In this document: positions 29,708-62,737 of the stretch, piece by piece
Layout: every line of letters starts with the position of its first letter
Position numbering within the stretch: the stretch's first letter is position 1
IMG/VR virus record: IMGVR_UViG_3300036760_000522
Span: 1-64,000 of that record
Length of the DNA stretch: 64,000 nucleotides
Direction: 5' to 3' (one strand)
Translations under genes and position numbers: made by a program
The notes under the pieces: generated by a model
What the model was told of the DNA's origin: nothing
The model's input: only the letters and a program-made list of their open reading frames with translations
The model's database searches: none

Positions 29708-32700
29708 GTGGCACGGTTAAATTCAACAGCAATAGCGGGGTATTACCCGACTCCGGAACATCTAATTCCGAGGATTGCGAAACACCTTCGTGTGATTGAG
29801 TCCGATCAATGGTCGGGGGCGTGCGCTAGGTGGATGGATCCGTGCGCAGGTGATGGGGCTCTGATTTGTGATCTCGTTACTCGAGTGATGGATCAACCGG
29901 GCAAGGCAGGGCTCTACCTTTGTGAGCTTGAGAAGGAACGCGCTGAACGTTGCAAGGCCAAAGTCTATGAACTGTTCGGCTGGAAAGCTCAACAACAAGT
30001 TTTGCACGGGGACGCCTTTCACACGACTTTTGATGACGGTGACTGTGAAATCCTCTATCTGAATCCGCCGTATGATTTCGATCCGAAACACGTCCGTTTG
30101 GAGCAGAAGTTCCTTTCACGCTTCACGCAAGCGTTGCGACTCGACGGCGTGCTCGTCTTTGTTGTCCCGCATTATGCGCTTTCGGCTAGCGCTGAGCTTC
30201 TGGCCAAGGAGTACAAGGATCTCGTTTGTCTGAGATTTCCCGATCCTGACTACGCCACCTTCAAACAAGTTGTTGTGTTCGCCAGACGGTCGCGTCGTTT
30301 CGAACCGGATCCTGTGGTCGTTGCTCGCGTTCAAGCGTGGGCAGACTCAGTGGAGGGACTGCCCATTCTGGGGGAGACGTCGGCAGTCTACGAAGTCAAA
30401 GGGACGATGTACACAACAACGTGGAAGGTCCAAGAGTTGGATCTGCACGCTCTTGTCGCTAAGGCCCGCCCGTGGCACCAGACGACCCGTGAAGGGCTTC
30501 TTCCAGTTCCCCACACTCTGCCAACGACTCCCCCAGAGTCGCTCCTCTGGAGGCGTTACACGCTGGCTACTCCCCCTAGACCGGCGCACATCGCGAGCGG
30601 CCTCGCTACGGGTCTTTTCAACGGGCTTCGGATCAAGCCCGACACTGACACATCCGGGCTACCCGACCTCTTGGTCAAGGGGACTTTCGAACGAGAGTTC
30701 GTGCCTGTCGAGGATCGGCTTGACGCGGACGGCGTAATCATCGGCGCCGTGGAAGTTGAACGACCTCGGTTAAGTGTGACCTGCCTCAACCTGACAACGG
30801 GCACCTACCAGGAGTTGGGGACGCCTGGGAACCCTACGCTTGGTGACCTCTTGGCGAACTATCGCCAAAGCCTCATGGCTCAGATGCGACACCAATGCCC
30901 AGTCTTGTACGACCCGCAGGATCCCCCTGTTGTCACACTCAAGCCTGTCAGGCGGAAGCTGTACAAAGCTCAGGAGCACTCAGCCAAAGCGATCTTGAAA
31001 TTGCTTGAGCAACGCGAGACGAACCGATCAGCTATTTTGCTTGGCGAAATCGGCAGCGGCAAGTGTCTAGGTTTGGGCACCCTCGTGCTCAAATATGATG
31101 GGACACGCACACCTGTGGAGAGTATTCGTAAGGGGGATTTGTTGATGGGGCCCGACAGCAAGCCTCGCAAGGTTTTGAATACGACTAAAGGGACGGGTTC
31201 TCTTTACAAAGTTGTACCTGTTACTGGGGATTCTTGGATCTGCAATGACGCGCACATTCTGACTCTCGTACACACGATGAGTGATGAGATTTTTGACATA
31301 CCGTTAGCGCGTTATCGCAGTGGCCGCAGACTCAATTTGCGCTTGCGAAATGGACAGACTTCGCGAAGAACTACACATCCTGTTGAAGAGTTCAAGCAGT
31401 TCTTCCCGGAAAACGGAGTTGATTTTCCGGCTCAGGTAGTCACACCATTAGTTGATCCTTACTTTTTAGGTGTGTGGTATGGCGACGGGACTAAATTTAG
31501 TCTAAACGGGGTCAGTCGTTCTGTCGAAGTCACAACGGCGGACCAGGAGATCTTGTCGCTGTTGTCTACGATAGCCTCACAGTACAACTTGAAAGTCAGA
31601 GCCCGTAAAAATTCCAATCCCGACAATAAGGCGACCACTTACGCGCTCACTGTTGGGAACAGAGTCACAAAGAAGCCGTGGGCACACACGAGGGGTAACA
31701 GACCTAATCAACTTCTGCGACAGTTACAGGTATTGTACAAGGACGGGTTCCATCTGCCGCAAGAATATTTGACAGGCAGCCGTGAAGTGCGGAGAGCGTT
31801 TCTTGCGGGGCTGTTGGACTCAGACGGGTATCGGAACGGCCCTGGCGTTTTCGATTTCATTCAAAAGAAGCGAGAGTGGTCCGAAGACGTTTGCTTCTTA
31901 GCTCGTTCTCTAGGTATCAGGGCCACACTACGGAAGACAAGAAAATCCGCTTACCGTGGCGTTGCGGGTGACGTGTACTGGCGGGTCACCATGAGTGGGG
32001 ACTTTTCTGATTTGCCTTTACGTATTCCTCGTAAGCAAGGGCCAATGAGAGCTGCGGTGCGAAAGAATCGAGCCGGGGAGCCGAGTTACCGTCGCACGAA
32101 ACATGTAAGCCGCACGGGCATTCGTATTGGATCGATTGGCCTGGGTGAGTACGCAGGCTTCGAATTGAGTGGTGATGGACGGTTTTTACTAGGGGACTTC
32201 ACAGTCACACACAATACGAGCACGGTTTTAGCTGTCGCAAAAACGATCGCCAAAACTGTGTTCGTCATGTGTCCTCCGCACTTGCTCGACACGTGGAAGA
32301 ACGAGATCAAAGCGAACGTGCCGGAAGCACGTGTGCGTGTTTTGAAGACGATCGACAGTGTGAACCGTTTCGCTGAGGTCGTTGTTGAAAAGCCTCAGCT
32401 CACGATTGCGATCGTGTCGCGTGAGAGTGCCAAACTTGGCCACGGTTGGGAAGGTGTGGGCTCTGCATGTCCCAAGTGTGGCGCTGCAACGCCTGATACA
32501 GATTTAGCTCGGAAGCGCGCTCATTGCGAAGCTGTCGAAGTTCGTGCAGAGGACAGTCTCGCAAAGATGGCTGTTTCACTGGCTGCAACATTGTCTCGAT
32601 ACGCACCTAACCACTCAACGGTTCGAGCCTTGTTGAAGGGGCGTCATTGGTCACGGATTTTGACACATCGTGTAGCCAAAGCGAGTCCGCCTGCTTGGAG

Positions 32701-34519
32701 TGGTATTGAGCTGGAATCACTGACTGAGATTTTTGATCAGATTTTGATCAACCCCTCGGAGGACGGAATTCGTCTCTTTTTTAGGCTCTTGGCTGCGATC
32801 AAAAATCCAGCGGAGATCATACCGGATTTGGTGCGAAAGACTAAGGCGTGTATTGAAGCAAGCCCATATGCTTACCGCTTGGATTCTGTGGAGCGTGTGT
32901 TGGGGCTTTTCCTGCCACCAAACTCCGACCTTCAACGCTTTCTCGGTTTCAAGTTTTGGGATCACGATTTGGAGGCTATCGTGTCGACTGGTGTGTCGAC
33001 CGTTGGTGGTCGCCTTTGTTGGGCTGGGGGCACTCTCTTTTGTGATGACCGTCAAACAGGCTCTGTCGAGGCTGCCCTTGCGCTGCTTGACGAATTGATG
33101 TCTCAAGGCAAATTCACCATGTCCGATCCGTGTGGTGAGCCGTTGTTTGGTGCGTCAGCTCCGCGTCGTTATTCGTTGTCGAAGTATGTCGTCAGACATC
33201 ATCCGGATCTTTTCGATCTATTGATCCTAGACGAAGGGCACGAATACAGTAAAGCGGATACGGCCCAAGGATCGGCCGCACACAAGCTGATACAGCTTGG
33301 GATCCCGACCATTTTGATGACAGGGTCCCTCATGAACGGCTACGCACGAAGTCTGTTCATGAACCTGTGGAGTCTGTCGCCTGAGTTTCGACGCGAGTTC
33401 AATCGAAGCGACTTGCCACGGTTCGTGGATCGTTACGGTTACCGCAAGCGACTGATTGTCGAGGAGCAGGGGGAAGTTGTTGCCTACGGCTCTGTGTCGG
33501 ATCGTGTCGTGCGTGGAATCAAAATGCTCGGTGACGCACCAGGGGTCTTGCCGCTTCTCCTGTTCCGTCACCTCTTGCCGATCAGTGTGACGTTACACAA
33601 ATCGGACCTCGCTCTTGAGTTACCACGCTCAGAACTTCGACAGGTGCTCATTGATCCTGATCCTGCGACGAAGGCAAAGTACGACTTGTTGGTGCAAAGC
33701 CTCATGTCACAAATTAAAAAGGATCAGTTCGATGAGAAGCGCTCCGGGAAGCTCTTTGGTGCTCTAGCTGAGATCCCGAGCTACCTAGATCGCGCCACGT
33801 CGGACACAGGGAACACAGATTACGGGGACTACGAGATCCGATACCCTGCGAGCATTGGCGCTGAACTGGTTGCGTCAGCGCCAGCAATACCCGAGAGCGC
33901 CCGTCTCACCAAAGAAACTTGGCTGCTTGATACAGTTCAACAAGAACTCGACGAAGGGCGTCGAGTTCTTGTATTCTCGTGGCACACGTGCTTGTTACCG
34001 CGTCTTGCTCGGATCCTGTCCGAACACATCATGGAGCCCGTCCAGGTCCTTTACGCGGACAAGGTTCCGACCGGGAAACGTCAGCAGTGGATCGACACCA
34101 AGGTTGTCAAGAGGGACGTCCGCGTCATGGTCGCGAACCCGCTGACGGTACAAACAGGGCTCAACAATTTGGTACACTTCGCGACAGAGATCTGGCACGA
34201 GAACCCTGCGTGCAACCCGCTCATTTTCCGCCAGGCCATCGGTCGAGTGGATCGGATTAATCAGACCCTTGAGACCAGGATCCTGGTCCCTGTGTACCGA
34301 GGCACGATGCAAGAGACCGTCTACGATCTTTTGCTGCATAAGGTCGCCACGTCGACAGCCACCGATGGTGTGGACCCCTCAGCAGCGCTCATGGCGGTTG
34401 GTGGCGTCGAGGAAAACTATTCGGCGGGGCTCAGCCTCGGACGGGAGTTGTGGTCGGCGTGGACGCGGGGTGCCGGCGCGTCTCTAGTTCAAGCGCAGCG
34501 CGAAAAGCGGTCTGCTTGA
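29708..34519 (+). CDS. DNA methyltransferase-SF2/SNF2 helicase fusion containing an intein
   Basis: DPCAGDG (SAM motif I), NPPY (amino-MTase motif IV), GEIGSGK(T), DEGH, C-terminal QTGLN...QAIGRVDR. Confidence 0.85.
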   Translation: MARLNSTAIAGYYPTPEHLIPRIAKHLRVIESDQWSGACARWMDPCAGDGALICDLVTRVMDQPGKAGLYLCELEKERAERCKAKVYELFGWKAQQQVLHGDAFHTTFDDGDCEILYLNPPYDFDPKHVRLEQKFLSRFTQALRLDGVLVFVVPHYALSASAELLAKEYKDLVCLRFPDPDYATFKQVVVFARRSRRFEPDPVVVARVQAWADSVEGLPILGETSAVYEVKGTMYTTTWKVQELDLHALVAKARPWHQTTREGLLPVPHTLPTTPPESLLWRRYTLATPPRPAHIASGLATGLFNGLRIKPDTDTSGLPDLLVKGTFEREFVPVEDRLDADGVIIGAVEVERPRLSVTCLNLTTGTYQELGTPGNPTLGDLLANYRQSLMAQMRHQCPVLYDPQDPPVVTLKPVRRKLYKAQEHSAKAILKLLEQRETNRSAILLGEIGSGKCLGLGTLVLKYDGTRTPVESIRKGDLLMGPDSKPRKVLNTTKGTGSLYKVVPVTGDSWICNDAHILTLVHTMSDEIFDIPLARYRSGRRLNLRLRNGQTSRRTTHPVEEFKQFFPENGVDFPAQVVTPLVDPYFLGVWYGDGTKFSLNGVSRSVEVTTADQEILSLLSTIASQYNLKVRARKNSNPDNKATTYALTVGNRVTKKPWAHTRGNRPNQLLRQLQVLYKDGFHLPQEYLTGSREVRRAFLAGLLDSDGYRNGPGVFDFIQKKREWSEDVCFLARSLGIRATLRKTRKSAYRGVAGDVYWRVTMSGDFSDLPLRIPRKQGPMRAAVRKNRAGEPSYRRTKHVSRTGIRIGSIGLGEYAGFELSGDGRFLLGDFTVTHNTSTVLAVAKTIAKTVFVMCPPHLLDTWKNEIKANVPEARVRVLKTIDSVNRFAEVVVEKPQLTIAIVSRESAKLGHGWEGVGSACPKCGAATPDTDLARKRAHCEAVEVRAEDSLAKMAVSLAATLSRYAPNHSTVRALLKGRHWSRILTHRVAKASPPAWSGIELESLTEIFDQILINPSEDGIRLFFRLLAAIKNPAEIIPDLVRKTKACIEASPYAYRLDSVERVLGLFLPPNSDLQRFLGFKFWDHDLEAIVSTGVSTVGGRLCWAGGTLFCDDRQTGSVEAALALLDELMSQGKFTMSDPCGEPLFGASAPRRYSLSKYVVRHHPDLFDLLILDEGHEYSKADTAQGSAAHKLIQLGIPTILMTGSLMNGYARSLFMNLWSLSPEFRREFNRSDLPRFVDRYGYRKRLIVEEQGEVVAYGSVSDRVVRGIKMLGDAPGVLPLLLFRHLLPISVTLHKSDLALELPRSELRQVLIDPDPATKAKYDLLVQSLMSQIKKDQFDEKRSGKLFGALAEIPSYLDRATSDTGNTDYGDYEIRYPASIGAELVASAPAIPESARLTKETWLLDTVQQELDEGRRVLVFSWHTCLLPRLARILSEHIMEPVQVLYADKVPTGKRQQWIDTKVVKRDVRVMVANPLTVQTGLNNLVHFATEIWHENPACNPLIFRQAIGRVDRINQTLETRILVPVYRGTMQETVYDLLLHKVATSTATDGVDPSAALMAVGGVEENYSAGLSLGRELWSAWTRGAGASLVQAQREKRSA
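31064..32215 (+). mobile_element. intein (384 aa) with LAGLIDADG homing endonuclease
   Basis: Starts CLGLGT directly after Walker A Lys, ends VTHN, Thr+1; FLGVWYGDG and FLAGLLDSDG motifs. Confidence 0.92.
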
Positions 34520-51043: not shown

Positions 51044-51068
51044 GCGGTTGGGGAAGGTCTGGTGCGTA

Positions 51069-51932
51069 GTGAAAGCCTTAGTGCTCAGTGGTGGAGGGTC
51101 GAAGGGGGCGTATGAGGTCGGAGCGATCTACCATCTGTGTGTAGTCGCTGCTCGAACCTATGACGTGATTTGTGGAGTTTCTGTAGGCGCTCTGAACGGC
51201 GCTTTTTTGGCCCAGTGGAAAGCTGGGGATGAAACCACAGGAGCTATGAAGCTCGACGACTTCTGGGCGACCATCAACCAGTCCAAAGTCTACAAGGCTT
51301 GGTTCGGTGGATACTTGGCGGCCCTGTGGAAACCGAGTCTTTACAATTCCAAGCCACTGCATGATTTGGTGCACAATAATTTGGACGCTGAGGCTGTTCG
51401 TCGCAGTGGTAAGCTCCTGCGTGTTGGAGCAGTTGACCTCAACACAGGTGAATATAGGCTGTTTGACGAACGACATCCAAAGCTTTGGGACGCAGTCCTA
51501 GCAAGCGCTGCCTATCCCGCGATTCTGTCTCCCGTAAAATTGGAATCGGGCCTTTGGATTGATGGAGGCGCGCGAGACATCACACCTCTTGGTGCTGCGA
51601 TACAACTAGGTGCAACAGATATCGACGTTGTCATGGCCTCTCCGTCGGCTGTGAAGCCTAGGAAAGCCCAAGGCATGAACGCGATCGACATTGCTTTTCG
51701 GGCTATCGACATTTTGACGGACGAGGTCAATCGAGGAGACCTGGCCAAGGCGCAGCTCTACAATCAACTGGTTGAGAGCGACCAACGCCCTGACAAGCGT
51801 TACGTGAAACTCACGGTCATCAGGCCGGATACCGAACTCACCAGCAATTCGTTTGACTTCTCTCCGAGCCTCCTCGCTTCGATGCGGAAGCGAGGTTACG
51901 AGGACGCAGATCGTGCCTTGTCCCGTGCTTGA
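51069..51932 (+). CDS. patatin-like phospholipase
   Basis: VLSGGGSKG, GVSVG (GxSxG), IDGG. Confidence 0.9.
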   Translation: MKALVLSGGGSKGAYEVGAIYHLCVVAARTYDVICGVSVGALNGAFLAQWKAGDETTGAMKLDDFWATINQSKVYKAWFGGYLAALWKPSLYNSKPLHDLVHNNLDAEAVRRSGKLLRVGAVDLNTGEYRLFDERHPKLWDAVLASAAYPAILSPVKLESGLWIDGGARDITPLGAAIQLGATDIDVVMASPSAVKPRKAQGMNAIDIAFRAIDILTDEVNRGDLAKAQLYNQLVESDQRPDKRYVKLTVIRPDTELTSNSFDFSPSLLASMRKRGYEDADRALSRA

Positions 51933-52538: not shown

Positions 52539-55500
52539 ATGTCCTCGCCTAGTTTTCTTGATGTCTCGGCCCACGTAACCGGTACGACAGGAACGACACG
52601 TACTCCGGACGCGTCGGGGTTTGGACTGGCCGCCGACAACATCCTGTGGTGCTACGTCAATTTACGATTCAGTGGTTGCTCTACGGCCACTGTTACGATG
52701 CCGGCCGCACAGAACTGGAGCCTAGCCAGCGACCAGTCACGGGGCACTAACGCACGGTCGTTGCTCTATTGGAGGCGGTGGGGAGACGGGACCGACGATA
52801 CAACCCCTACCGTAACGGTCACCACAGGCGGGCTCTGGGGCGCCACCCTGGCGGCTTGGACGGGATGCAAGGAGACAGGAAACCCCTACGACGCCGTCAC
52901 AGAGGACCAGGAAACCACAGCTTCGACTACGATGACAGCCCAAGGGGCTACTTCTGACGGTATCGATCGGACTTCGACACGTTGGTTCTTTTCCCCTGAT
53001 GACAACAACCACGGCTCGCCGAGTGAGGGTACCCTCGCGTTTGGAGGTACGAGCTACCAAAACTCCTCTGGCGTCGGATATTCGACATCCTGCTCCTACT
53101 TGACGGGGGAGGTCTCTGGCGACGTTGGTACGGCCACCATGACCCAGGGCTCGAACGGCCCTGATACCTACAACTGGCACACGATCGTTCTTGCACCAAG
53201 TACCTACGATCCGTCGATTAGCGACGACACGATTTCGACGACAGACAGCGTCGCTGTTTCGATCGACTATGGTCGAAGTTCTTCAGACACGATTTCCGTA
53301 ACGGACTCCGTTGCTGTTTCACCGACGTTCGGACGCGCAGTTTCTGATGCGATTTCGGTCGTTACGGATCTCACAGTTGAACTGCTCACAACAACTATCA
53401 CTTACGACGTTACGGTTTCTGACGCGATCTCAGTCACGGACCAGTTGTTGGTCGAGACTGCTTTCCCAGAAGACGCGATTTCGGTCACAGATACAACAAC
53501 TACCAGTTTGGACTATGGGCGTTCTGCCAGTGACTCAATAGACATTGTCGACGAAACCGAGATTATGACAGCCAATCTGGATGTCATGGTCGAGGACACG
53601 ATCTCAGTCACCGACACAATTTCGATTGACTTGGTTTACGCCCGCACTGCCGACGACACAGTATCCGTCACAGATCAAACTTCTGTTGACTTGGTCTACG
53701 CTCGCGAGGCAAACGACGCGATTTCGGTTACCGAGGACACTCTTGCCGAGACCGCGTTCCCTCAAGATACGATTTCGGTCACGGACCAGTTCGCAGTTGA
53801 ACTGTCGTTTGATCGTTCAGCATCAGACACAATCGTAACGACAGATCAGATTCTCACGTCGGTCGAGTTTGACCGCTCAGCATCAGACGCGATTTCGACC
53901 ACAGATGAGACCTCGATTGCATTTGAGCGTGAAGCCAACGACACAGTTTCCGTAACTGATACGTCCACGACAAACGTCGAATACGAGCGTTTGGTTTCAG
54001 ACGCTGTTTCAATTGCAGATCAGACAACAACGGAACTCACGTTCAATCGTACGGCTTCCGATTCGATTGTGGCCACGGACACGACGACCGCGGAGCTTGA
54101 AAGCGGGGAGGTCGTAGGGATCGATGACGACATCGATGTAGACGTCGTCTACGGCAGGATCGTCAGTGACGTTGTTCCAGTAACTGACGATCTATCGGTT
54201 ACGACTTTCTACGACCGCACACTCTCGGATGTTGTCTCAGTAGCGGACCAGACACTGATCGAGACTGTCTTTCCAGAAGACTCGATTTCGATCGTTGACG
54301 CTGTCGCCGTGGGCTTCGTATTTGATCGGCTTCTTTCGGATGCAGTTTCCGTCACTGACACGACGCAGGTCAACGTTGAATTTGATCGGACCCTTGCTGA
54401 TACAGTTTCGGTCGTTGACGCAATCATTGTAGGGATCCAATTCGACAGGTTCGCGGATGAGGCAATCTCTGTCGCTGATTCAACGGCTATAACTGTCGAT
54501 CGGAGCCCGTCCGACACTGTATCGGTTACAGATGAGACCGCTGTCGCCGCCGACTATAGCCGGACACTCGTCGATGTGATCACGGTTGCAGATCAAGTCA
54601 CGTCCTCAGTCGAGTACGATCGCGTCGCAAGTGACACGATTTCTGCTGCCGACACGACGGCTGTCACTCTCACTTTCACGAGAACGGCTTCTGACACGGT
54701 TTCGGTTGCCGACCAGACAATGGTCGAAACCAGCTTTGACGCTGATGTCATCGACATCACGGACACTGTTGCGACAGCGGTTGACTACCAACGAACGCTC
54801 AGTGACACGATTTCAGTCAGTGATCAAACGACTGTCGAGAACGCGTTCCCAGAGGACACAATCTCCGTCACTGACGCAACGGTCGTCGACTTAGCCTACA
54901 ATCGCAAACCTGCGGACACGATCTCGACGACTGATAAGGCGTCTTGGTTCTTCTACTTGGGACTCAGTGATGCCGTTCTCGACAGTGACGTTGCTTACAC
55001 ATCGCTCACGTACGAGAAATCTGCGGCGGACACGATCTCGGTTACTGACCAAGCAACAGCGTCGCGGGAGTTGGGTCGCGTTGTTAGTGATACGATTTCA
55101 GTATCTGATACAACGACTATTGATCTCTATCGGATCATTTCCGTCACAGCTTCAGACACAGTCACTGTCGTCGACCAGACCACACCGGCAACCAGTTACG
55201 TTCGGAGTGCTCAAGACACGGTTTCAACGGCCGATACCGTAGCTGCTGGTCTCGAGTTCACACGCTCCGCCTCCGACACGATTTCAGTCACTGACACGTC
55301 GGCGACTTCAGTCAGCTTCTCGAGGACCGCCACCGACGCAATCGTTGTCACCGACACACTGACAGCGGAAACCAACTACGTTCGAACTGTCCAAGACACG
55401 ATTTCGATCACGGATCAAGTCGTTCGCAGCATTTCATTCGATCGTTCGGCTTCAGATGCGATCTCTGTCGCTGACGCAGCGACTGTCGCCCTCACGCTTG

Positions 55501-56552
55501 GCCGAACTGCCAGCGATATTGTCTCGACGACCGATACGTCAGCAACAGCTCTCGATTACTCGAGGCTTGTTCAAGACGGAGTAGCACTCACCGACGTACT
55601 TCTCGCAGCAACACAGTACTCACGCGACGCCAACGACACGATTTCGATCGTAGACACGGTAGCAGTCGACAGGACCCGTGAAGTATCGGCGTCCGATACG
55701 ATCTCTGTCACTGACGCCGTGGCTACGGAATCTGTGTTTGGACGGACCGTCAGCGACACGATTTCGATCACTGACGAGCTTTCCACGGTCACGAACTACG
55801 TTCGGTTTGCTGATGACGCGATCAGCGTCGTCGACACAGTTACACGTGGGCTTGAAGCTGGGGTCTTTGCCCAAGACACGATCGACGTAACGGACGAAGT
55901 CACGAAGATCGTCACGTTTGAGAGGATCCTTACCGAGGTCCTGACTGTCACCGACGAGCTTCTTACCGTCACGAGCTACGTCCGGTTCGCGGATGACGCT
56001 TTCACGATTACAGACCAAGCCACATCCTCAGTCGAGCAGGACCGGTCGGCTGACGACACAATGTCGGCCACAGACGATGTCGGCATTGCCGTCGATTACG
56101 TTCGGTTCGTAGACGACAGTCCACCAGTTTTCGACGACGTCATCGTCCGGACTTTCGATTTCAGTCTACGAAATCAACCCCCGACAACCACGATCCTGCC
56201 GCCTGTACCCACGGTATTCCGTTACCTACAACGCCTTGTCAATGGGAATCTGGTCTTGACACTAAGAGACCGTCAAGGCCCTTTCACGCCAGCGATTTTG
56301 TACTACTGCCTCTACAGAGTCACCAACTCAGGCGGACGGATACTTGTCGGAGCGCGTCACATCCCCAACACAGCAGGAGTTGGAGTCTTCTATGTCGTCG
56401 CACGCGCCGGAGAGCAACAGCAACCAGGTAATTGGTTAATCAGATGGGAGTACCAGAAGACACGTAATTCCCAAGTACGTATCGTGGAGCAAGCATTTCA
56501 AGTCGTAGCCGGAACCGTCGCGAACCCTGTGCAGAAGTTTGGTTGGGAGTGA
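52539..56552 (+). CDS. long acidic ~20-aa-repeat fibre-like protein (1337 aa)
   Basis: N-terminal beta domain, roughly 45-50 repeats, C-terminal Ig-like domain similar to the N-terminus of 57118. Confidence 0.8.
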   Translation: MSSPSFLDVSAHVTGTTGTTRTPDASGFGLAADNILWCYVNLRFSGCSTATVTMPAAQNWSLASDQSRGTNARSLLYWRRWGDGTDDTTPTVTVTTGGLWGATLAAWTGCKETGNPYDAVTEDQETTASTTMTAQGATSDGIDRTSTRWFFSPDDNNHGSPSEGTLAFGGTSYQNSSGVGYSTSCSYLTGEVSGDVGTATMTQGSNGPDTYNWHTIVLAPSTYDPSISDDTISTTDSVAVSIDYGRSSSDTISVTDSVAVSPTFGRAVSDAISVVTDLTVELLTTTITYDVTVSDAISVTDQLLVETAFPEDAISVTDTTTTSLDYGRSASDSIDIVDETEIMTANLDVMVEDTISVTDTISIDLVYARTADDTVSVTDQTSVDLVYAREANDAISVTEDTLAETAFPQDTISVTDQFAVELSFDRSASDTIVTTDQILTSVEFDRSASDAISTTDETSIAFEREANDTVSVTDTSTTNVEYERLVSDAVSIADQTTTELTFNRTASDSIVATDTTTAELESGEVVGIDDDIDVDVVYGRIVSDVVPVTDDLSVTTFYDRTLSDVVSVADQTLIETVFPEDSISIVDAVAVGFVFDRLLSDAVSVTDTTQVNVEFDRTLADTVSVVDAIIVGIQFDRFADEAISVADSTAITVDRSPSDTVSVTDETAVAADYSRTLVDVITVADQVTSSVEYDRVASDTISAADTTAVTLTFTRTASDTVSVADQTMVETSFDADVIDITDTVATAVDYQRTLSDTISVSDQTTVENAFPEDTISVTDATVVDLAYNRKPADTISTTDKASWFFYLGLSDAVLDSDVAYTSLTYEKSAADTISVTDQATASRELGRVVSDTISVSDTTTIDLYRIISVTASDTVTVVDQTTPATSYVRSAQDTVSTADTVAAGLEFTRSASDTISVTDTSATSVSFSRTATDAIVVTDTLTAETNYVRTVQDTISITDQVVRSISFDRSASDAISVADAATVALTLGRTASDIVSTTDTSATALDYSRLVQDGVALTDVLLAATQYSRDANDTISIVDTVAVDRTREVSASDTISVTDAVATESVFGRTVSDTISITDELSTVTNYVRFADDAISVVDTVTRGLEAGVFAQDTIDVTDEVTKIVTFERILTEVLTVTDELLTVTSYVRFADDAFTITDQATSSVEQDRSADDTMSATDDVGIAVDYVRFVDDSPPVFDDVIVRTFDFSLRNQPPTTTILPPVPTVFRYLQRLVNGNLVLTLRDRQGPFTPAILYYCLYRVTNSGGRILVGARHIPNTAGVGVFYVVARAGEQQQPGNWLIRWEYQKTRNSQVRIVEQAFQVVAGTVANPVQKFGWE

Positions 56553-56932
56553 CAATGCAGAAATTGCTGGAAAAGCTTCGCGCGTTTGAGGCGTCAACTA
56601 CTTCGGAACTTTGGATTACACGTTACGCAATGCGTGTGATCTGTCCTTCTTGTGCGGACAAGATGGCGTCTCTCGGGATCCGCAGTGTCCGGGCCTCAGT
56701 GTTATTTGGTGAGGAGCGCCTAGCTGCTGCTGCCTTGGACCGTACTGTCACAGCCGCTTGGGGCACGTTGCCGAAGGGGTGGACCAATAAGTCGGTCAAG
56801 AAGTTTTGGGAGTCGTTGACAGGGGATAGAAAGCACAAGATCACAGCCTGCATGAAGGCCCTCAAAGGAAAGCCTGGGATCGACGATCCTGGAGCCTTTT
56901 GTGCTAGCCTGAAGCGGAAACTCGAGGACTAA
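56543..56932 (+). CDS. hypothetical virion-associated protein
   Basis: ORF in structural run; DDPGAFCASL motif. Confidence 0.6.
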   Translation: MGVTMQKLLEKLRAFEASTTSELWITRYAMRVICPSCADKMASLGIRSVRASVLFGEERLAAAALDRTVTAAWGTLPKGWTNKSVKKFWESLTGDRKHKITACMKALKGKPGIDDPGAFCASLKRKLED

Positions 56933-57117
56933 AGCAATGGGCCACTACACGTATGATCGTCGAACCGCGGCGACAACAGACCCAGATTGGGAAGCACTCG
57001 AAAACGACCTGGAGCTCAATCTTGGCGACTTGCGTAAAGCAGGTGGAAGACACGGGACTCCGGGAATTGCGACTGAAGCCAACACTGTCAAAGTGACTCG
57101 TTCCGGACGTTAAGTGT

Positions 57118-57885
57118 ATGTCAGGCGTCGCGTACTTTCGAGGGCAGCAGTTAGGGATCGACGACCTCGACCTATGCCTTGAAACGTCGTCAGGCCGACC
57201 TGTCAACGCGGCTGAGATTAGCTACGCTCTCTACGACTTCACGACTGGGCAAGAGGCTTTGCTCGGGATCCCACGACGGACACCGGTCAACGATGTCGTA
57301 GGACACTACTACGCCAGCCTCATCATTCCTCTCGACGCGAACATTGGTTGCTATCGGATCCGGTGGACCTTTCGTGAACTCATCGGCGGAGCCGTTAATC
57401 AAGTGGTCCAAGAGTTCAATGTCATCGACAAGGTGGCTCCTGAAACGACCATCTACACATGTTGTGAAGCCGAGTTGATTCGCAGCTTGCGGTACAGAAC
57501 CCGCGACCTGCGCCCGGATCGCAATTATCACTTCAGACCTCCGGCGCACGAAGAAACCATCCGACAGTTCAATCGTGTGTTTGGTTACATCTGGGAAGAT
57601 GATGAGCTACGAGAATTTTTGAGCCAGGCACTCGACATGGTGTCGGCTGCTCCGCCACGTACACCGATTCCGAACTGCGACATCTTGGCTAGAACCTATC
57701 CCGAATGGCGTTCACTCGTGGTGACAGGCGCCATGATGCATGCGATCTTTGCGTTGATGCTGAATTGGATTTCTGACGAATTCTCAGTTGTAGGGAGCAC
57801 ATTGGTTCGTGTTACGCTTCCGGATGGGCAGGTACTAGACTTGGCAATCAAAGAGCTGCACGACATTCTCCATGAGGATTTGTGA
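57118..57885 (+). CDS. putative head-tail connector/neck protein, N-part, ending in a 33-aa split-intein N fragment
   Basis: extein ends WISDEF; followed by SVVGSTLVRVTLPDG (intein block A-like) and a stop. Confidence 0.75.
   Translation: MSGVAYFRGQQLGIDDLDLCLETSSGRPVNAAEISYALYDFTTGQEALLGIPRRTPVNDVVGHYYASLIIPLDANIGCYRIRWTFRELIGGAVNQVVQEFNVIDKVAPETTIYTCCEAELIRSLRYRTRDLRPDRNYHFRPPAHEETIRQFNRVFGYIWEDDELREFLSQALDMVSAAPPRTPIPNCDILARTYPEWRSLVVTGAMMHAIFALMLNWISDEFSVVGSTLVRVTLPDGQVLDLAIKELHDILHEDL
57784..57885 (+). mobile_element. split intein N-fragment (Ser1, 33 aa)
   Basis: block A-like S-V-V-G-S-T-x-V...DG. Confidence 0.75.
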
Positions 57886-58850
57886 TGTCGTCTGGGTTGT
57901 CTAAACGGCAAGTGGCTCGTCAGTACGGACTCAATTTACACACAGTTGATATACTCTTGAAAAGAAATGTGCTGTCAATTCAAGCGGGTTGTTCACGACT
58001 TCGGCCCAAGCTTGTTGGTTTGGAAAAATTAGTTGAAGGAGAGCATTACATTGTGTGCTTGGAGTGTGGAGCATTCCAAGGAGCGATCATGTCCAAGCAT
58101 CTTCAAGCTTGTTCTGGGACCACGTACGCCGCCTACTTGTGTAGATATCCTGACACTCCTACGATGTCTGTTTTGACTGCTGCCAGCAAAGCCAAAACAG
58201 ACAGTCAGAAACGGTGTCAGTCCTTGACTTTGAAAGCGAGATTCAAGACAAAATCTGGTGATATTACCCGACGACAAATCTCAGAGGCGTCACGTCGATT
58301 ACATGATTCCGGATATCGTGAACGTGCCGCACGACACCTTCGTGTGTTGAATTCCCAACCAGAGCAGAGAGCAGCCCGGTCCGCAGAATCTAAGGCTAGG
58401 TGGGATTCAGGGGAGCAGGGATCTGTAAACAAGAGGTGGAGAACGAAGCATAGAGGTGAGATGCTTGCACTGGCTGCCAACGCACGTCGACATATTGGAC
58501 GGAAGCTAACCAAAATACACAAGGCTGCCAAAGACGCCATGCACGCCTCGGGACTTTCAGGGTTTGTCACTGAATACGAGGTGGGGTACTACTCTATAGA
58601 TGAGGCCCGTCCTGACCTCCGATTAGCCGTAGAGATTGACGGTTGTTACTGGCACGGTTGTCTTGTATGTGGTTTTTCCGGGATGGACAATACTCGGTCC
58701 TACGATAGACGTAAAACCACTTACCTGCGCAATCGCGGGTGGACCATTCTTCATCTTCGCGAGCACGAGATTAAGGACAATCTCAACGAGTGTGTGCGTC
58801 GTGTAGGTCGTATGGTTGAACAATTGTCTGCTAGAGAGGTTGCAGCATGA
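57885..58850 (+). CDS. free-standing Vsr/DUF559-like endonuclease with N-terminal HTH and zinc finger
   Basis: EY.VGYYSID...LAVEIDGCYWHG...YDRRK...LRNRGW.ILHL.E; CLECG...KHL. Confidence 0.8.
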   Translation: MSSGLSKRQVARQYGLNLHTVDILLKRNVLSIQAGCSRLRPKLVGLEKLVEGEHYIVCLECGAFQGAIMSKHLQACSGTTYAAYLCRYPDTPTMSVLTAASKAKTDSQKRCQSLTLKARFKTKSGDITRRQISEASRRLHDSGYRERAARHLRVLNSQPEQRAARSAESKARWDSGEQGSVNKRWRTKHRGEMLALAANARRHIGRKLTKIHKAAKDAMHASGLSGFVTEYEVGYYSIDEARPDLRLAVEIDGCYWHGCLVCGFSGMDNTRSYDRRKTTYLRNRGWTILHLREHEIKDNLNECVRRVGRMVEQLSAREVAA

Positions 58851-59479
58851 ACATTGAAACTCGGAAAGCGATACAAGATGCTTTCCGCATAGGTCAGCTT
58901 CGTGTTCAAACTGTGGAACCGTCAACTGGTCATGTAAATCTGTGTGTTGTATCTGACGTGTTGCGCCACGAAACGGCACATAAAGATAATGTACGTGTGG
59001 TACTCAATGACGGCCGGACAGTTACGTCAACGATCGATCATTCATTGTTCTCCAGACACGACAGCAAGATTTCCCCTATTCAAGCTGGGTCTCTCAAATC
59101 CGGAGATACTGTCGCTACAGTGTCTGGAGGATCTTTAGAATGGTCGGAGGTGGCCAATGTCGATCGACAACCACCTGAGAAACACACGTACGACTTGTCG
59201 GTTCCGGGCCCAGAGAACTTCGTACTTTCGAACGGTATCCTTGCACACAACTCGTACTCGATAGGGGGTGTCTCCCTCGATATTGAGAAGTCGAGCAAGT
59301 ACGAGTCTGCTTACCAGGCGATCAAGGATCAGTTCAACGAACAACTTGAAAAGGCCAAGGCGACAGTGAAGATCGTCAAGGGGCTACAGCAACCGAGATT
59401 CGGCATCGGGATCCGATCCAGCTTCGGTCCTATGGTTTCAGCTGGTGCCCTCACTCCTTCAAAATTTGTTGGATTTTAG
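58847..59479 (+). CDS. split intein C-fragment (135 aa) + C-extein of the neck protein
   Basis: TIDHSLF (block B), TYDLSVPGPENFV (F), AHN-S (G, Ser+1 at 59252); extein SYSIGGVSLDIEKSSKY. Confidence 0.85.
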   Translation: MNIETRKAIQDAFRIGQLRVQTVEPSTGHVNLCVVSDVLRHETAHKDNVRVVLNDGRTVTSTIDHSLFSRHDSKISPIQAGSLKSGDTVATVSGGSLEWSEVANVDRQPPEKHTYDLSVPGPENFVLSNGILAHNSYSIGGVSLDIEKSSKYESAYQAIKDQFNEQLEKAKATVKIVKGLQQPRFGIGIRSSFGPMVSAGALTPSKFVGF

Positions 59480-59499
59480 ATTCGGTGTTTCTTAAGCCT

Positions 59500-59808
59500 A
59501 TGTCTGAAGCAGTTGAAACCCAGAAACCCACCCAACTCACACCGAACGATCCTGTGGATCCAGAGCAGCTGGACCTATTTCGGCAGCTCGCCGAGTCACG
59601 TGCACGATTGTCAGACACTCTTTTGTCCCTGGAGCTGGAGAAGATCCAGATCCTCGGTGCAGCTCGCCAGATAGAGGCACAACAAGGCAAACTCATGGCG
59701 AGGTGCCTGACAGAGCGAGGACTGGCGCCTAATACTGCCGTGAGTATCGACCCGAAGACAGGCGTGTTGACTGTCATACAACAAGAACCTGAGATGCCCT
59801 CCAGTTGA
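59500..59808 (+). CDS. coiled-coil hypothetical protein
   Basis: ORF. Confidence 0.6.
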   Translation: MSEAVETQKPTQLTPNDPVDPEQLDLFRQLAESRARLSDTLLSLELEKIQILGAARQIEAQQGKLMARCLTERGLAPNTAVSIDPKTGVLTVIQQEPEMPSS

Positions 59809-59821
59809 GAGAGGCGCTACG

Positions 59822-60094
59822 TTGATCTATGTGGATCAGTTGATGAGCGGCACTGTAGATGGTTGTCGTGCAACGCAGTGGTGCCATCTCATTGCTGATA
59901 CCGACGAAGAGCTACACAGTTTTGCTAAACAGATAGGTATGAAACATGTGTGGTTCCAAGATGCGCCGCCGGCCAGTTTTCCCCATTACGATTTGACGGC
60001 ACGACGACGTACAGTCGCTGTCAGGCTGGGTGCCACAGAATTAGCGCGACGCGAATTCTCGGCTAAGATGAAGCAGATCCGTCAAACTTGGTGA
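59822..60094 (+). CDS. DUF4031 family protein
   Basis: MIYVD...WCHL.ADT.EELH.FA..IG...WFQ...HYDL. Confidence 0.8.
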   Translation: MIYVDQLMSGTVDGCRATQWCHLIADTDEELHSFAKQIGMKHVWFQDAPPASFPHYDLTARRRTVAVRLGATELARREFSAKMKQIRQTW

Positions 60095-60100
60095 TTTTCA

Positions 60101-62737
60101 ATGCCGTACGCTTCCCAACGAGATCGTGATCCCTCACTACTCGAACTTGAGGTTACGCCGTGGCCAGCCCCGCCACTCAATCTGTTTCTGACGAGCGGTT
60201 ACAAGCCTGGGGTTTTCGATCTTGTTTGGACGGATCCTTCTCAGCTGACACTGAATTCCAGATTCATTCTGGTCGGGGTCAACATTTATCGATCCTTCGA
60301 TTCTGAGTTTGGACCCTACGACCGTATCAACGAGTTCCCCATCGGTTCAACGTTCTGGCGAGACCAGACCGACAATGTCCTGATCTTGGACGAACCAGTT
60401 ACTGACGATCGTTGGCTTCTTCGAGGCCCTTGTACAGGCTCTGAGCTGGATGCTCCTAGGTATGTGTTCCGAACGCTTAGGTGCCCCCTGGTGCAGCCCG
60501 GGTCGCAAGCCCTACCAGCGAACATCCGGGACGTGGAAGTCCGCGTCAATGGCGTTGTGGCCCGTCTCAGTCGCGTCATTGGACCAACTGGTGAAATCGA
60601 GGTCGATCCAAATTCCTACCCCAACGTAGCTCTCCAAAAGCGGGACCCTGGGATCATTCCGGATCCTGGAACAACAGTCACAGTCTCCTACACCTACGAC
60701 AGATCGTTGCTTCGAACCGATCTCTTACAGCGGGTCTTTTACCGGGCGACGACCGTTGGCTATTTGGTTGACCTCAATTGTGCAACTGAGGTCACGCCAA
60801 TCCTACGTGAGACACCTCTAGAGCGTGCTGCGGTAACGAGCAGCGTCGAGGTCGAGAAGATTGATTGGATCTGGCGCGAGGCAGTTCGTCGCAATCGGTG
60901 GATTCTGGATCAAGGCGGCGAACGCGTCAAAGTGTTCATTCGGAAGCATGTGGGTGAGATTTGTGGTTGCACACAAACGACAACTCATAAACAACCGTTG
61001 AACGATTGTCATGTCTGTTTTGCACCGCAAACTTTGGTGCGCACTGATACCGGATACAAACCCATTAACACAGTAGCTGTGGGTGATCATGTTTTGTCTT
61101 CGAGCGGCCAGTATAGCCGTGTGACACGTGTGTTCGAAACCCCCTTTACAGGCGACTTGTTGGCAATCAGGTCCGCAGTTTCAACCAATGCGATTTTGAC
61201 TACTTTGAATCATCCTTTTTACACCTTGGTTGGACACCACGGTGTTGTCCAGTGCCGCCCGACGACTTGCCACATGATTTTGGACCGTGATAACGTTCTC
61301 TACAGTATTCAAGGACAAGGTACGGGGGTACGACAACTCCCTAGTGGGCGTTGGTGGGCGAGAGCTGGTGCTGGAACTAGAGGAAAACGTATAAGTTTGG
61401 GTACATTTTCTACTGAAGAGGAAGCCAAACAAGTTGTTCAATCCTATCGTCTGCGTCACAAGAAAGCCCACTCTTTGGAGTGGCTTCGAGCTGAGGATTT
61501 GGACGAGGATGATTGGCTTGTCGCACAATATCCGAGAACCGTCAGGGACTTGACCTATGTGGAGATCCCTCTATGTTTTCAAAAAACATCCCAATTTGGT
61601 CCAGATCGTCAAGGTGTTACACGATTTGATGTCGATGAAGAATTTCTGTGGGTTGTCGGATTGTACTTAGCTGAAGGATCTGCCGGTGGTCGCAGTATCA
61701 CCTTTGCTCTTCACGCGGATGAAGTAGACTACCAAAGTAGAGTCAAACGGTTTTTTGATCAACGTGGGTACACAGCCTCTATTAGAGTCGATAGTGGCGA
61801 CGGTCTAGGAGCCGTCGTGGTAGTCAACGGTTCACATTTATCAGAGTGGTTCCCTGTTTGGTTGGGTAGACACTGCGATAAAAAGCGGATACCAGAAGAG
61901 TTGATGTGTTTGCCTCCGAAAAAACAACAGTGGTTGCTTCAAGGGATCTACGATGGCGACGGATGGAAAAACGGTACTGAAGTAACACAGACTTCCGAAT
62001 TACTGGCTCTGCAATTGTCGGAGGTTCTACACCGCATTGGGAAACGGCCTTTAATACGACAACAACGTAGCAAGGCGTTGACACCTAAAGGCAATCCACG
62101 CAAATTGGCCTACTGTGTGAATTGGGAGGGTTCAGAGTTTACCAATGCCAGTCGAAAAGGTCGGTGGTCTTTCGAAGGACAGGAACTGTCTAGGATCAAG
62201 GGGATCACAAAAGTTCCATACGAAGGACCAGTATACAATTTGGAGGTCGAAGGGGATCACACGTATGTTGTGCAGGGTGTAGTGGTGCACAATTGTTACG
62301 GCACCTCAATAGTTGGTGGGTACGAAGGACCGTTCGATGTCGTCATGGCCCCCGACGACGCTGAACGAAAGCATTCACAACGTGACACGGGACGTACGAT
62401 CGAACATGGGTACGAGGTTTGGACGGGTCCTAGTCCACTCCTCAGTCAACGTGACTTTGTCGTCAAGATCACAGGGGACCGCTACAGCGTAGGTGCTGTC
62501 CGAATGCCGACGAATCGCGGCATGGTGCTCCAACAACACTTCATGTTGGGGCATTTGGACGAGAAAGACATCAGGTATCGTGTTCCGATCGATCTCTGCA
62601 ATCACGTGGTGTCTAGGTATGTAGACCGGTTGGTTCCTCCTCTCAACTCACCTGCACAAATAACGGACAAGTCAAACATACCTAGTGAGCGTCAGATTCG
62701 TGGCCGCACTATTACGTGGGAAAATATCGTCTGGTGA
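60101..62737 (+). CDS. putative head-closure/neck structural protein containing an intein
   Basis: FN3-like N-terminus, GGERVKVFIRK, C.C...CHV|CYG zinc cluster, C-terminal D.VV...G.RY.V. Confidence 0.65.
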   Translation: MPYASQRDRDPSLLELEVTPWPAPPLNLFLTSGYKPGVFDLVWTDPSQLTLNSRFILVGVNIYRSFDSEFGPYDRINEFPIGSTFWRDQTDNVLILDEPVTDDRWLLRGPCTGSELDAPRYVFRTLRCPLVQPGSQALPANIRDVEVRVNGVVARLSRVIGPTGEIEVDPNSYPNVALQKRDPGIIPDPGTTVTVSYTYDRSLLRTDLLQRVFYRATTVGYLVDLNCATEVTPILRETPLERAAVTSSVEVEKIDWIWREAVRRNRWILDQGGERVKVFIRKHVGEICGCTQTTTHKQPLNDCHVCFAPQTLVRTDTGYKPINTVAVGDHVLSSSGQYSRVTRVFETPFTGDLLAIRSAVSTNAILTTLNHPFYTLVGHHGVVQCRPTTCHMILDRDNVLYSIQGQGTGVRQLPSGRWWARAGAGTRGKRISLGTFSTEEEAKQVVQSYRLRHKKAHSLEWLRAEDLDEDDWLVAQYPRTVRDLTYVEIPLCFQKTSQFGPDRQGVTRFDVDEEFLWVVGLYLAEGSAGGRSITFALHADEVDYQSRVKRFFDQRGYTASIRVDSGDGLGAVVVVNGSHLSEWFPVWLGRHCDKKRIPEELMCLPPKKQQWLLQGIYDGDGWKNGTEVTQTSELLALQLSEVLHRIGKRPLIRQQRSKALTPKGNPRKLAYCVNWEGSEFTNASRKGRWSFEGQELSRIKGITKVPYEGPVYNLEVEGDHTYVVQGVVVHNCYGTSIVGGYEGPFDVVMAPDDAERKHSQRDTGRTIEHGYEVWTGPSPLLSQRDFVVKITGDRYSVGAVRMPTNRGMVLQQHFMLGHLDEKDIRYRVPIDLCNHVVSRYVDRLVPPLNSPAQITDKSNIPSERQIRGRTITWENIVW
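61016..62293 (+). mobile_element. intein (426 aa) with AP2-like domain and LAGLIDADG endonuclease
   Basis: CFAPQT start, TLNHPF, VHN-C end; GVRQLPSGRWWAR...ISLGTFSTEEEA; VGLYLAEGS and LQGIYDGDG. Confidence 0.9.

Follow-up and report, generated by a model that had tools for sequence, protein, structure and literature searches.

A probable fractured virion-module gene of a jumbo phage, with an atypically split Ser1/Ser+1 intein around a free-standing Vsr-like endonuclease gene

Anatomy of the locus

The window analysed here comprises the first 64 kb of the 301,550-bp IMG/VR record UViG_3300036760_000522, which stems from a jumbo phage of ~300 kb. At positions 57118-59479 it holds three overlapping open reading frames (ORFs), which occupy three different frames of the + strand. 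ORF1 and ORF3 encode the two halves of a virion-module protein, the first ending in an N-terminal intein fragment (IntN) and the second beginning with the C-terminal fragment (IntC), and ORF2 encodes a putative endonuclease. Very probably, the three ORFs form a fractured gene, in which an intein of the Ser1/Ser+1 type interrupts the host protein between DEF and SYSIGG, the endonuclease gene sits in the linker following helix α1 of the intein and the host protein is restored by trans-splicing. The features are as follows:

57118-57885, + strand: ORF1, 255 aa, consisting of a 222-aa N-extein and a 33-aa IntN
57118-57783, + strand: N-extein, 222 codons, ending in ...NWISDEF, supported by homologues, the end point of a tblastn alignment and the ratio of non-synonymous to synonymous substitution rates (dN/dS)
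57784-57885, + strand: IntN, 33 aa, from Ser1 to ...HEDL plus the stop codon TGA, containing block A and helix α1
57885-58850, + strand: ORF2, free-standing endonuclease, 321 aa (322 aa from the GTG at 57882)
58847-59479, + strand: ORF3, 210 aa, consisting of a 135-aa IntC and a 75-aa C-extein
58847-59251, + strand: IntC, 135 aa, ending in ...GILAHN, supported by Pfam Intein_splicing and invariant columns
59252-59479, + strand: C-extein, 75 codons, SYSIGGVSLDIEK...VGF plus stop codon, collinear with the last 75 residues of intein-less homologues

The Ser1 codon TCA (57784-57786) directly follows NWISDEF and opens the 33-aa tail SVVGSTLVRVTLPDGQVLDLAIKELHDILHEDL. The ORF1 stop codon TGA (57883-57885) shares position 57885 with the ATG of ORF2 in the form TGATG, and an alternative ORF2 start codon, GTG, is present at 57882. 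The ORF2 stop codon and the ATG of ORF3 overlap by 4 nt as ATGA (58847-58850). A Shine-Dalgarno (SD)-like GAGGA is located 6-7 nt 5' of the ORF2 start and GAGAGG is found likewise 5' of the ORF3 start. These coordinates make exact the layout of three ORFs, with overlapping stop and start codons on both sides, which had been recognized in an initial annotation of this stretch. ORF3 was matched by Pfam Intein_splicing above the cut-off (E 5.7e-13), and the first residues of its C-extein after ...GILAHN are SYSIGGVSLDIEK.

A 12.5-kb contig of another sample (L007) carries these three ORFs with identical stop codons, at 91-93 % nucleotide identity to the window, and a three-ORF arrangement of this kind recurs at more than 20 other loci. 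Immediately 5' of the fractured gene the two sequences differ: ~130 bp in the window (56994-57126) are replaced by ~850 bp in L007 (3877-4725), which encode three small ORFs of 71, 73 and 143 aa.

Splice junction and uninterrupted homologues

Searching 5.8 billion proteins gave 786 relatives of the N-extein at E ≤ 1e-3, most of which are located on 100-500-kb contigs; the following readings refer to the best 120 of them. Uninterrupted proteins of 294-303 aa, reading [DEQ][EQ]F-xYSIGG, accounted for 95. Most uninterrupted homologues read NWI[AS]DEF-DYSIGGVSL[ST]IE and about ten DEF-SYSIGGVSLDIE. At least 18 further proteins were N-halves of 251-274 aa with tails of 32-43 aa, which begin with Ser in all cases. 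When ORF1 was compared to cultured and deposited phages with tblastn, gp319 of Tunturiibacter phage Tunturi_5, the sole homologue met in a cultured phage, was found and the alignment ended exactly at residue 222. This protein (283 aa) is continuous across the junction (...ADQFDYSLNGVSLSL...; ...ADQFDYSLNGVSL...), and the junction of LR745208 reads ...HEEFDYSIGGISL....

Because about 100 intein-less homologues cross the same point uninterrupted (...NWI[AS]DEF-[DS]YSIGGVSL...), the junction ...DEF-SYSIGG... is fixed. The predicted trans-splicing product is very likely a protein of 297 aa with the junction ...NWISDEF-SYSIGGVSLDIEK.... The initial annotation had placed Ser1 at 57784 and the distal boundary at HN|Ser, had proposed the ligation product ...WISDEF-SYSIGGVSLD... 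and had named uninterrupted homologues which do not join at this junction as the finding that would speak against it. The 95 uninterrupted proteins do join there, and both boundaries are borne out by them.

The host sequence around the junction was compared in 214 distinct contexts (151 intein-less, 63 with intein). An acidic residue was present at either +1 or +10 in 150 of the 151 intein-less contexts. Those with Asp or Glu at +1 had Ser, Thr, Asn, Ala or Gly at +10 (103/103), and those with Ser, Asn, Gly, Thr, Gln or Ala at +1 had Asp at +10 (47/48). Intein alleles combined Ser or Thr at +1 with Asp or Glu at +10 in 61 of 63 contexts. As judged from these sequences, the host has adapted to its intein by moving an Asp from +1 to +10, which leaves room for the +1 nucleophile. 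The 28 intein-less contexts with Ser+1 and Asp+10 may have lost an intein precisely or may be favoured as homing targets.

Catalytic residues, class and split point of the intein

All motifs expected for splicing chemistry were located. The block A nucleophile was Ser in 32 of 32 surveyed alleles. In ORF3, block B is T62-I-D-H65 (59030-59041), which is invariant in alignment A2 and nearly so in alignment A4; block F contributes D116 (59192-59194), and block G is H134-N135 (59246-59251), followed by S136 as the +1 Ser. Blocks B, F and G and the HN-Ser end, as listed for ORF3 in the initial annotation, are thus all present. The NX motif is R40-H41 (58964-58969); its His is invariant in alignments A2 and A4 and the residue before it is mostly Arg or Lys. 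According to Pasch et al. (PMC10189870), the NX His is specific to Ser1 inteins, critical for splicing and preceded by Arg/Lys. Across 23-32 divergent sequences, Ser1, the NX His, T-x-D-H, the block F Asp, His-Asn and Ser/Thr+1 were invariant or near-invariant, and the corresponding IntC columns (H41, T62, D64, H65, D116, H134, N135 and Ser/Thr+1) were invariant or nearly so. The whole intein contains one Cys, C33 of ORF3 (58943-58945), which is unconserved among relatives; it is the single non-catalytic Cys noticed before in IntC. Zero Cys are present in IntN and IntC of another natural split allele, L026 (3464-4881).

The best solved relatives of the family profile are Ser1 inteins, i.e., PI-PkoII (6e-20), the Mja and Mvu TFIIB inteins (~1e-18) and the cysteine-less Aes123 PolB1 intein (7.5e-17); PolB16 is distant (E 7e-7). 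By its sequence, the window intein is assigned to class 1 as a putative mini-intein of the Ser1/Ser+1 (oxyester) subgroup.

IntN tails of split alleles measure 31-43 aa from Ser, except for 57-62 aa in two alleles with an endonuclease-IntC fusion. The window IntN aligns with the first 33 residues of contiguous mini-inteins. For the fold, the natural contiguous allele P0130 (residues 217-385) was modelled instead of the two chains of the window. The AlphaFold2 (AF2) model has a HINT fold with a predicted local distance difference test score (pLDDT) of 94.8 and a predicted template modelling score (pTM) of 0.89, and its TM values against solved inteins are 0.74-0.78. The window break maps to the α1-α2 loop, between P0130 model residues 27-34 (helix α1) and 41-47 (the following helix); this loop has 0-40 additional residues in contiguous relatives. 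The split point is the atypical site 'S2' after helix α1. An atypical split into 33 + 135 aa had been assumed at the outset and is borne out by aligning split with contiguous alleles and by the structure model.

The endonuclease encoded by ORF2

ORF2 consists of an N-terminal helix-turn-helix (HTH)-like region, a C2HC zinc finger (C58, C61, H72, C76) and a C-terminal Vsr-like/EDxHD nuclease with the residues E250, D252, Y255-W256-H257 and D274 and a GCYWHGCxxC motif. A family alignment (A3) was built from 18 homologues, which have in common a basic HTH-like segment at the N-terminus, a zinc finger of the invariant form C-x2-C-x10-H-x3-C and the conserved motif QS..LK.RF.T..G..T. The core of the nuclease has the pattern E250-x-D-G-C-Y-W-H257-G-C-x-x-C ... 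D274 ... K277 ... G-W. Within it, E250, H257 and D274 are the same in all 18 sequences and D252 is substituted in 2 of 18. E250 is found 7 residues ahead of the His, i.e., at the position of Phe62 in Vsr.

Pfam DUF559 matched ORF2 with 26.5 bits (cut-off 20.6). Matches under the cut-off were MTES_1575, Vsr (14.2 bits at a cut-off of 27) and, both weak, ROS_MUCR and HTH_23. The PHROG assignment is homing endonuclease. Profile matches in the PDB were 3hrl, a DUF559 structure (1.6e-5), the homing endonuclease I-Bth0305I, 3r3p (1e-4), and Vsr, 1cw0 (0.03), whereas no ORF2 homologue was detected in the collection of cultured-phage genomes at E ≤ 1e-5. Family alignment and PDB profile search support the earlier description of the enzyme as Vsr-like. 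ORF2 is, hence, a candidate Vsr-like/EDxHD homing endonuclease, for which cleavage activity and target are predicted from the sequence.

States of the insertion site

ORF3 was used for a profile-free scan of 1.8 billion representatives, and the intein site was further surveyed by look-ups of the encoding contigs and a scan of IMG/VR. In total, 38 loci with an intein at the DEF|SYS site were obtained, 32 of which are distinct. Besides the empty site of the intein-less homologues, the following states were observed:

Split intein plus a homologous endonuclease in a free-standing ORF: 19 distinct loci, the window and L007 among them
Split intein whose IntC carries an in-frame endonuclease fusion: L038 and L039, and the proteins P0141 and P0158
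Split intein, no endonuclease: L003, L013 and L034, the halves being separated by a short non-coding stretch (33 bp in L003)
Contiguous mini-intein of 157-196 aa: L014, L016, L018, L024, L032, L036 and L037, and the proteins P0128, P0130 and others
Swapped halves, the ORF for IntC and C-extein being 5' of the ORF for N-extein and IntN: L027 (4486-5924) and L089 (3001-4439)

One site thus shows empty, contiguous, split with endonuclease, fused, endonuclease-free split and swapped states. The contiguous state was represented by 7 distinct loci and 12 proteins, of which P0122, P0124 and P0126 are C-terminal pieces of genes that are fractured upstream as well. The swapped order of L027 was repeated in an independent Logan assembly; since read-through or frameshifting cannot give the whole protein from such a locus, it would be obtained via trans-splicing only.

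These states bear on the question whether the locus is simply a dying or mis-assembled gene, namely a contiguous intein with a nested endonuclease which was split by a frameshift, a sequencing error or decay. In favour of this, in-frame endonuclease-IntC fusions are found in the relatives L038, L039 and P0141. However, the window ORFs use three frames, their stop and start codons overlap precisely and SD-like sequences are present, the same architecture is present in the independent sample of L007 with mostly synonymous differences, at least 19 distinct alleles have their stop codon 31-43 codons from Ser1, and split alleles without endonuclease as well as alleles with swapped halves exist. We regard a decaying or mis-assembled gene as hardly credible.

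Proposed mechanism

The following steps are proposed for the fractured gene. ORF1, ORF2 and ORF3 are presumably co-transcribed and would be translationally coupled via the TGATG and ATGA overlaps. IntN would then dock on a largely pre-formed IntC, Ser1 would undergo an N-O acyl shift aided by the NX His H41 and the block B residue H65, the acyl group would be transferred to Ser+1 and Asn135 would cyclise. The outcome would be the ligated host protein of 297 aa. The endonuclease would have no part in splicing, but would mobilise the cassette by cutting cassette-free alleles in co-infection.

Several observations weigh against this proposal. Canonical split inteins show charge complementarity between IntN and IntC. 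No such signal was detected here, also not when split and contiguous alleles were compared; the net charge is about -3 for the first 30 residues of IntN and about -6 for the whole IntC, i.e., both are acidic. A scan of 56400-60200 for promoters and terminators gave counts equal to those of shuffled sequences and was uninformative. A hairpin pairing with the SD sequence is found at 57859-57884 of the window, which is no more stable than in shuffles, and a conserved hairpin before the endonuclease ORF was absent across 19 loci (mean z -0.4, 1/19 significant). Finally, Ser1 split inteins characterised to date often splice slowly or undergo side reactions, so that the efficiency is uncertain (PMC13014065).

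The charge pattern, which is unlike that of fast split inteins, would also be in line with intein fragments that associate without splicing, in which case the virion would hold a non-covalent protein of two chains. There is a parallel for this, as the fragmented NrdA of phage Aeh1 assembles without an intein. Nevertheless, residues needed only for the chemistry (Ser1, the NX His, the block B His, His-Asn and Ser/Thr+1) are kept at identities down to 35 %, and the shift of the host Asp from +1 to +10 makes room for a nucleophile, which mere docking would not maintain. A two-chain protein in the virion is therefore considered improbable, and trans-splicing is the preferred explanation.

Selection, recombination and mobility of the cassette

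Window and L007 were compared by the method of Nei-Gojobori. dN/dS was 0.03 for the N-extein, 0.10 for IntN, 0.19 for the endonuclease, 0.32 for IntC (8 changes only) and 0 for the C-extein, which has zero non-synonymous changes. With values of 0-0.32 in all five segments, every part is maintained by purifying selection. Sliding-window identity to L007 is 81-94 % in the background and rises in one patch:

~58400-59400, + strand: patch of 96-100 % identity to L007, spanning the nuclease half of ORF2, IntC and the first ~150 nt of the C-extein

The synonymous rate (dS) is 0.02-0.04 within the patch and 0.42 outside. We read the patch as the probable trace of a recent recombination or co-conversion tract.

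Two pairs of close relatives differ in the cassette. The first 32 intein residues are identical in L022, a split allele with endonuclease, and the contiguous L024, which differ by an insert of 944 bp. The contiguous allele L024 reads ...AAAGAGGAG|CGTATGATGGAT... and the split allele L022 reads ...AAAGAGGAG-GGTGAGGAGTAATG-[endonuclease]-...CAAAGGAG|CGTATGATGGAC.... From these junctions it follows that the cassette brings the IntN stop codon, its own overlapping start codon and the SD sequence for IntC; the IntC start in L022 is a Met-Met which is found in the contiguous L024, too. In the second pair, L026 and L014, the genomes are 98-99 % identical and differ by a cassette of 954 bp at the same intein position; they also differ by a 355-bp tract of 80 % identity, which extends from the cassette to the second intein site. 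On the IntC tree, in which many branches are unresolved, the 7 contiguous tips require 7 changes of state, and well-supported branches force at least 4 of these. L024 falls within split alleles in this tree, and its contiguous intein contains an internal SD-like AAGAGGAG and ATG-ATG. By its sequence, L024 would be explained no worse by a deletion between GAGGAG repeats that removed the cassette than by a gain.

It is possible, and we hold it tentatively as a variant of the fractured-gene model, that the endonuclease homes not to the intein-less host gene, but to the DNA of the α1-α2 linker in endonuclease-free mini-inteins. The endonuclease gene would then perhaps be a parasite of the intein, repeatedly turning cis-splicing into trans-splicing. 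This is suggested by contiguous and endonuclease-bearing split alleles, which are repeatedly sister tips (the 7 changes with at least 4 forced), by the cassettes at the same intein position in L026/L014 and L022/L024, and by a paralogous intein in the same host gene which a TnsA-like endonuclease interrupts at the equivalent point (see below). In addition, the model of Dassa et al. includes an integration point inside the intein (PMC2677866). However, the direction cannot be read, given that L024 fits a cassette deletion between the GAGGAG repeats at least equally, and the many unresolved branches of the IntC tree also count against this variant. If true, one site would cycle from cis-splicing to trans-splicing with endonuclease, to trans-splicing without it and to rearranged halves, and the cassette would be lost again. 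The family would then be a complete natural record of the origin of split inteins and a library of dozens of S2-split Ser1/Ser+1 inteins, one of them Cys-free.

Host protein

The host, a conserved virion-module protein, is a candidate head-tail connector or adaptor. It had initially been called a virion neck gene; its virion character agrees with the surrounding genes, which belong to tail-fibre-like and 'virion structural' PHROGs and to Laminin_G_3. For the neck, support is weak. The depositor of Tunturi_5 annotated gp319 as head-tail connector, and PHROG 17327 'head-tail connector' weakly matched 20 of 63 family members (E ≤ 0.01; best 8.6e-6), though not the window's own pieces. Leads from a language model were Mu gp36, T4 gp13, a gp6-like connector and the SU10 adaptor, all with scores below the reliability line of 0.9. 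Conversely, Pfam gave no match for the 63 members of the host family, a PDB sequence profile search for the host protein returned nothing relevant, and a PDB fold search with the AF2 host model gave only generic β-sandwich matches (E > 3e-3). Only uncharacterised phage proteins, e.g., gp165 of Bacillus phage G, were matched in a BFVD fold search.

The host fold was modelled on the natural intein-less homologue P0016 with a 63-sequence alignment. The AF2 model (pLDDT 76) comprises a β-sandwich (1-102), a helical domain (117-261) and a disordered tail. Both points at which inteins were found, RDN|PDRNYHF (~residues 133-141) and DEF|SYS (224/225), coincide with the best-conserved motifs of the host family, and the segments at both points are unstructured in the monomer model of P0016, as would be expected for assembly interfaces.

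At RDQ/RDN|PDRNYHF, the same host gene is fractured by a paralogous intein in L002 (LR745208.1; 2705-5079, minus strand) and L014 (2345-5100). This intein has Cys1, a 33-34-aa IntN and ~29 % identity to the IntC of the DEF|SYS site, and its break is at the equivalent point. Between its halves lies a TnsA-like endonuclease (Pfam PF08722), which is unrelated to ORF2. For the host protein of L014, one trans-splice and one cis-splice are needed. Among P0126, P0152, P0163, P0167 and P0168, a third site was observed at which the host family is interrupted (PDRNY|[ST]FRPP), and P0163 has a further intein near its C-terminus. The host gene family is an intein hot spot.

Comparison to known systems

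In 2009, fractured genes were described that contain split inteins together with free-standing endonucleases of the Vsr-like or GIY-YIG type (Dassa et al., PMC2677866). Their hosts were DNA-metabolism enzymes and a terminase, and the survey listed only GIY-YIG and Vsr-like endonucleases, the TnsA-like type not being among them. The window resembles these loci in the order (N-half with IntN, endonuclease ORF, IntC with C-half), the phage origin, the invariant Glu at the Vsr Phe62 position (E250 of ORF2), an endonuclease 3' end that runs into the beginning of IntC and the existence of a relative without endonuclease. It differs in that the host is a virion-module protein, the overlaps are 1 and 4 nt (6-69 bp between endonuclease and IntC in the 2009 loci), a 5' untranslated region and the conserved hairpin before the endonuclease ORF, which the 2009 loci had, are absent, the intein is Ser1/Ser+1 and split after α1, and contiguous, fused and permuted stages are found at one site.

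PolB16 OarG, a naturally and atypically split Ser1/Ser+1 intein, was characterised by Pasch et al. (PMC10189870). It shares with the window intein the natural split, the short IntN and long IntC, Ser1 and Ser+1, the NX His after Arg/Lys and the low number of non-catalytic Cys. Its IntN, however, has 15 aa and is split at the S1 site after β2, compared to 33 aa and S2 after α1 in the window; its host is a PolB instead of a connector-like protein, the sequences are distant, the block B His is conserved in the window family and L026 lacks any Cys. Atypical natural splits have an IntN of 15-37 aa and an S1 or S2 site, and PolB16 was described in 2026 as the sole natural cysteine-less atypically split intein known, performing poorly and of limited utility (PMC13014065).

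AceL-TerL and GOS-TerL are, as summarised in PMC13014065, natural atypical splits after the first α-helix (S2) with an IntN of 25-37 aa (Thiel 2014; Bachmann & Mootz 2015). By description, they have in common with the window the S2 split, the origin from phage metagenomes and a host gene of virion assembly, and they are set apart, likewise by description, by their dependence on cysteine (GOS-TerL is Ser1/Cys+1). The window IntC showed weak tblastn matches to TerL inteins of Serratia phages.

Concerning the endonuclease, I-Bth0305I is an EDxHD homing endonuclease encoded by a group I intron (PDB 3r3p; Taylor et al. 2011, PMC3239194). Its catalytic core aligns with ORF2, and both belong to the Vsr-like family derived from PD-(D/E)xK which was first predicted from fractured genes. 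In contrast to I-Bth0305I, ORF2 has its own N-terminal half with HTH-like region and C2HC finger and keeps the Vsr-type metal-site motif GC[YF]WHGCxxC.

No intein of this host family was described in the papers searched. Novel elements are the host gene, the S2 split in a Ser1/Ser+1 intein, the size of the family in nature and the occurrence of all gene-breaking stages at one site. The known picture is filled in and not changed, and the result is useful more than surprising. The initial annotation had suggested 'possibly a new tool intein'; many Ser1/Ser+1 variants with S2 split are indeed at hand, whereas the novelty was overstated, as PolB16 OarG, the AceL and GOS TerL inteins and the fractured terminase gene precede it.

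For intein biology, every stage of the 2009 gene-breaking model is available at one site and in near-identical pairs, which makes the order of steps and their mechanism testable. For phage biology, a highly conserved and essential-looking protein of the virion module can apparently be maintained in two pieces. For protein engineering, many natural Ser1/Ser+1 variants with N-fragments of 31-35 aa are provided, including those of the window (one non-conserved Cys) and L026 (no Cys).

Other features of the window

Three inteins in total are present within the 64-kb window. The next large gene after the fractured gene (60101-62737, 878 aa) contains a contiguous 426-aa Cys1/Cys+1 intein at ~61016-62293 with AP2 and LAGLIDADG domains and the boundaries ...NDCHV|CFAPQ...VVVHN|CYGTS; L007 has an intein-less allele of 423 aa, ...NDCEN|CYGTS. 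The other intein (~31064-32215; Cys1/Thr+1, LAGLIDADG/Hom_end) is located in a methyltransferase/helicase-like ORF of 1603 aa (29708-34519) and interrupts the P-loop (GSGK|C...THN|T).

A patatin-like phospholipase (Pfam 2.2e-27) is encoded at 51048-51932 within the structural module, and a DUF4031 gene (59822-60094) is situated just 3' of the fractured gene. The ORF at 52539-56552 (1337 aa) consists nearly completely of degenerate repeats of ~20 aa (...D[TA]ISVTD...). It has 87 % nucleotide identity to its L007 counterpart and probably encodes a fibre or decoration protein.

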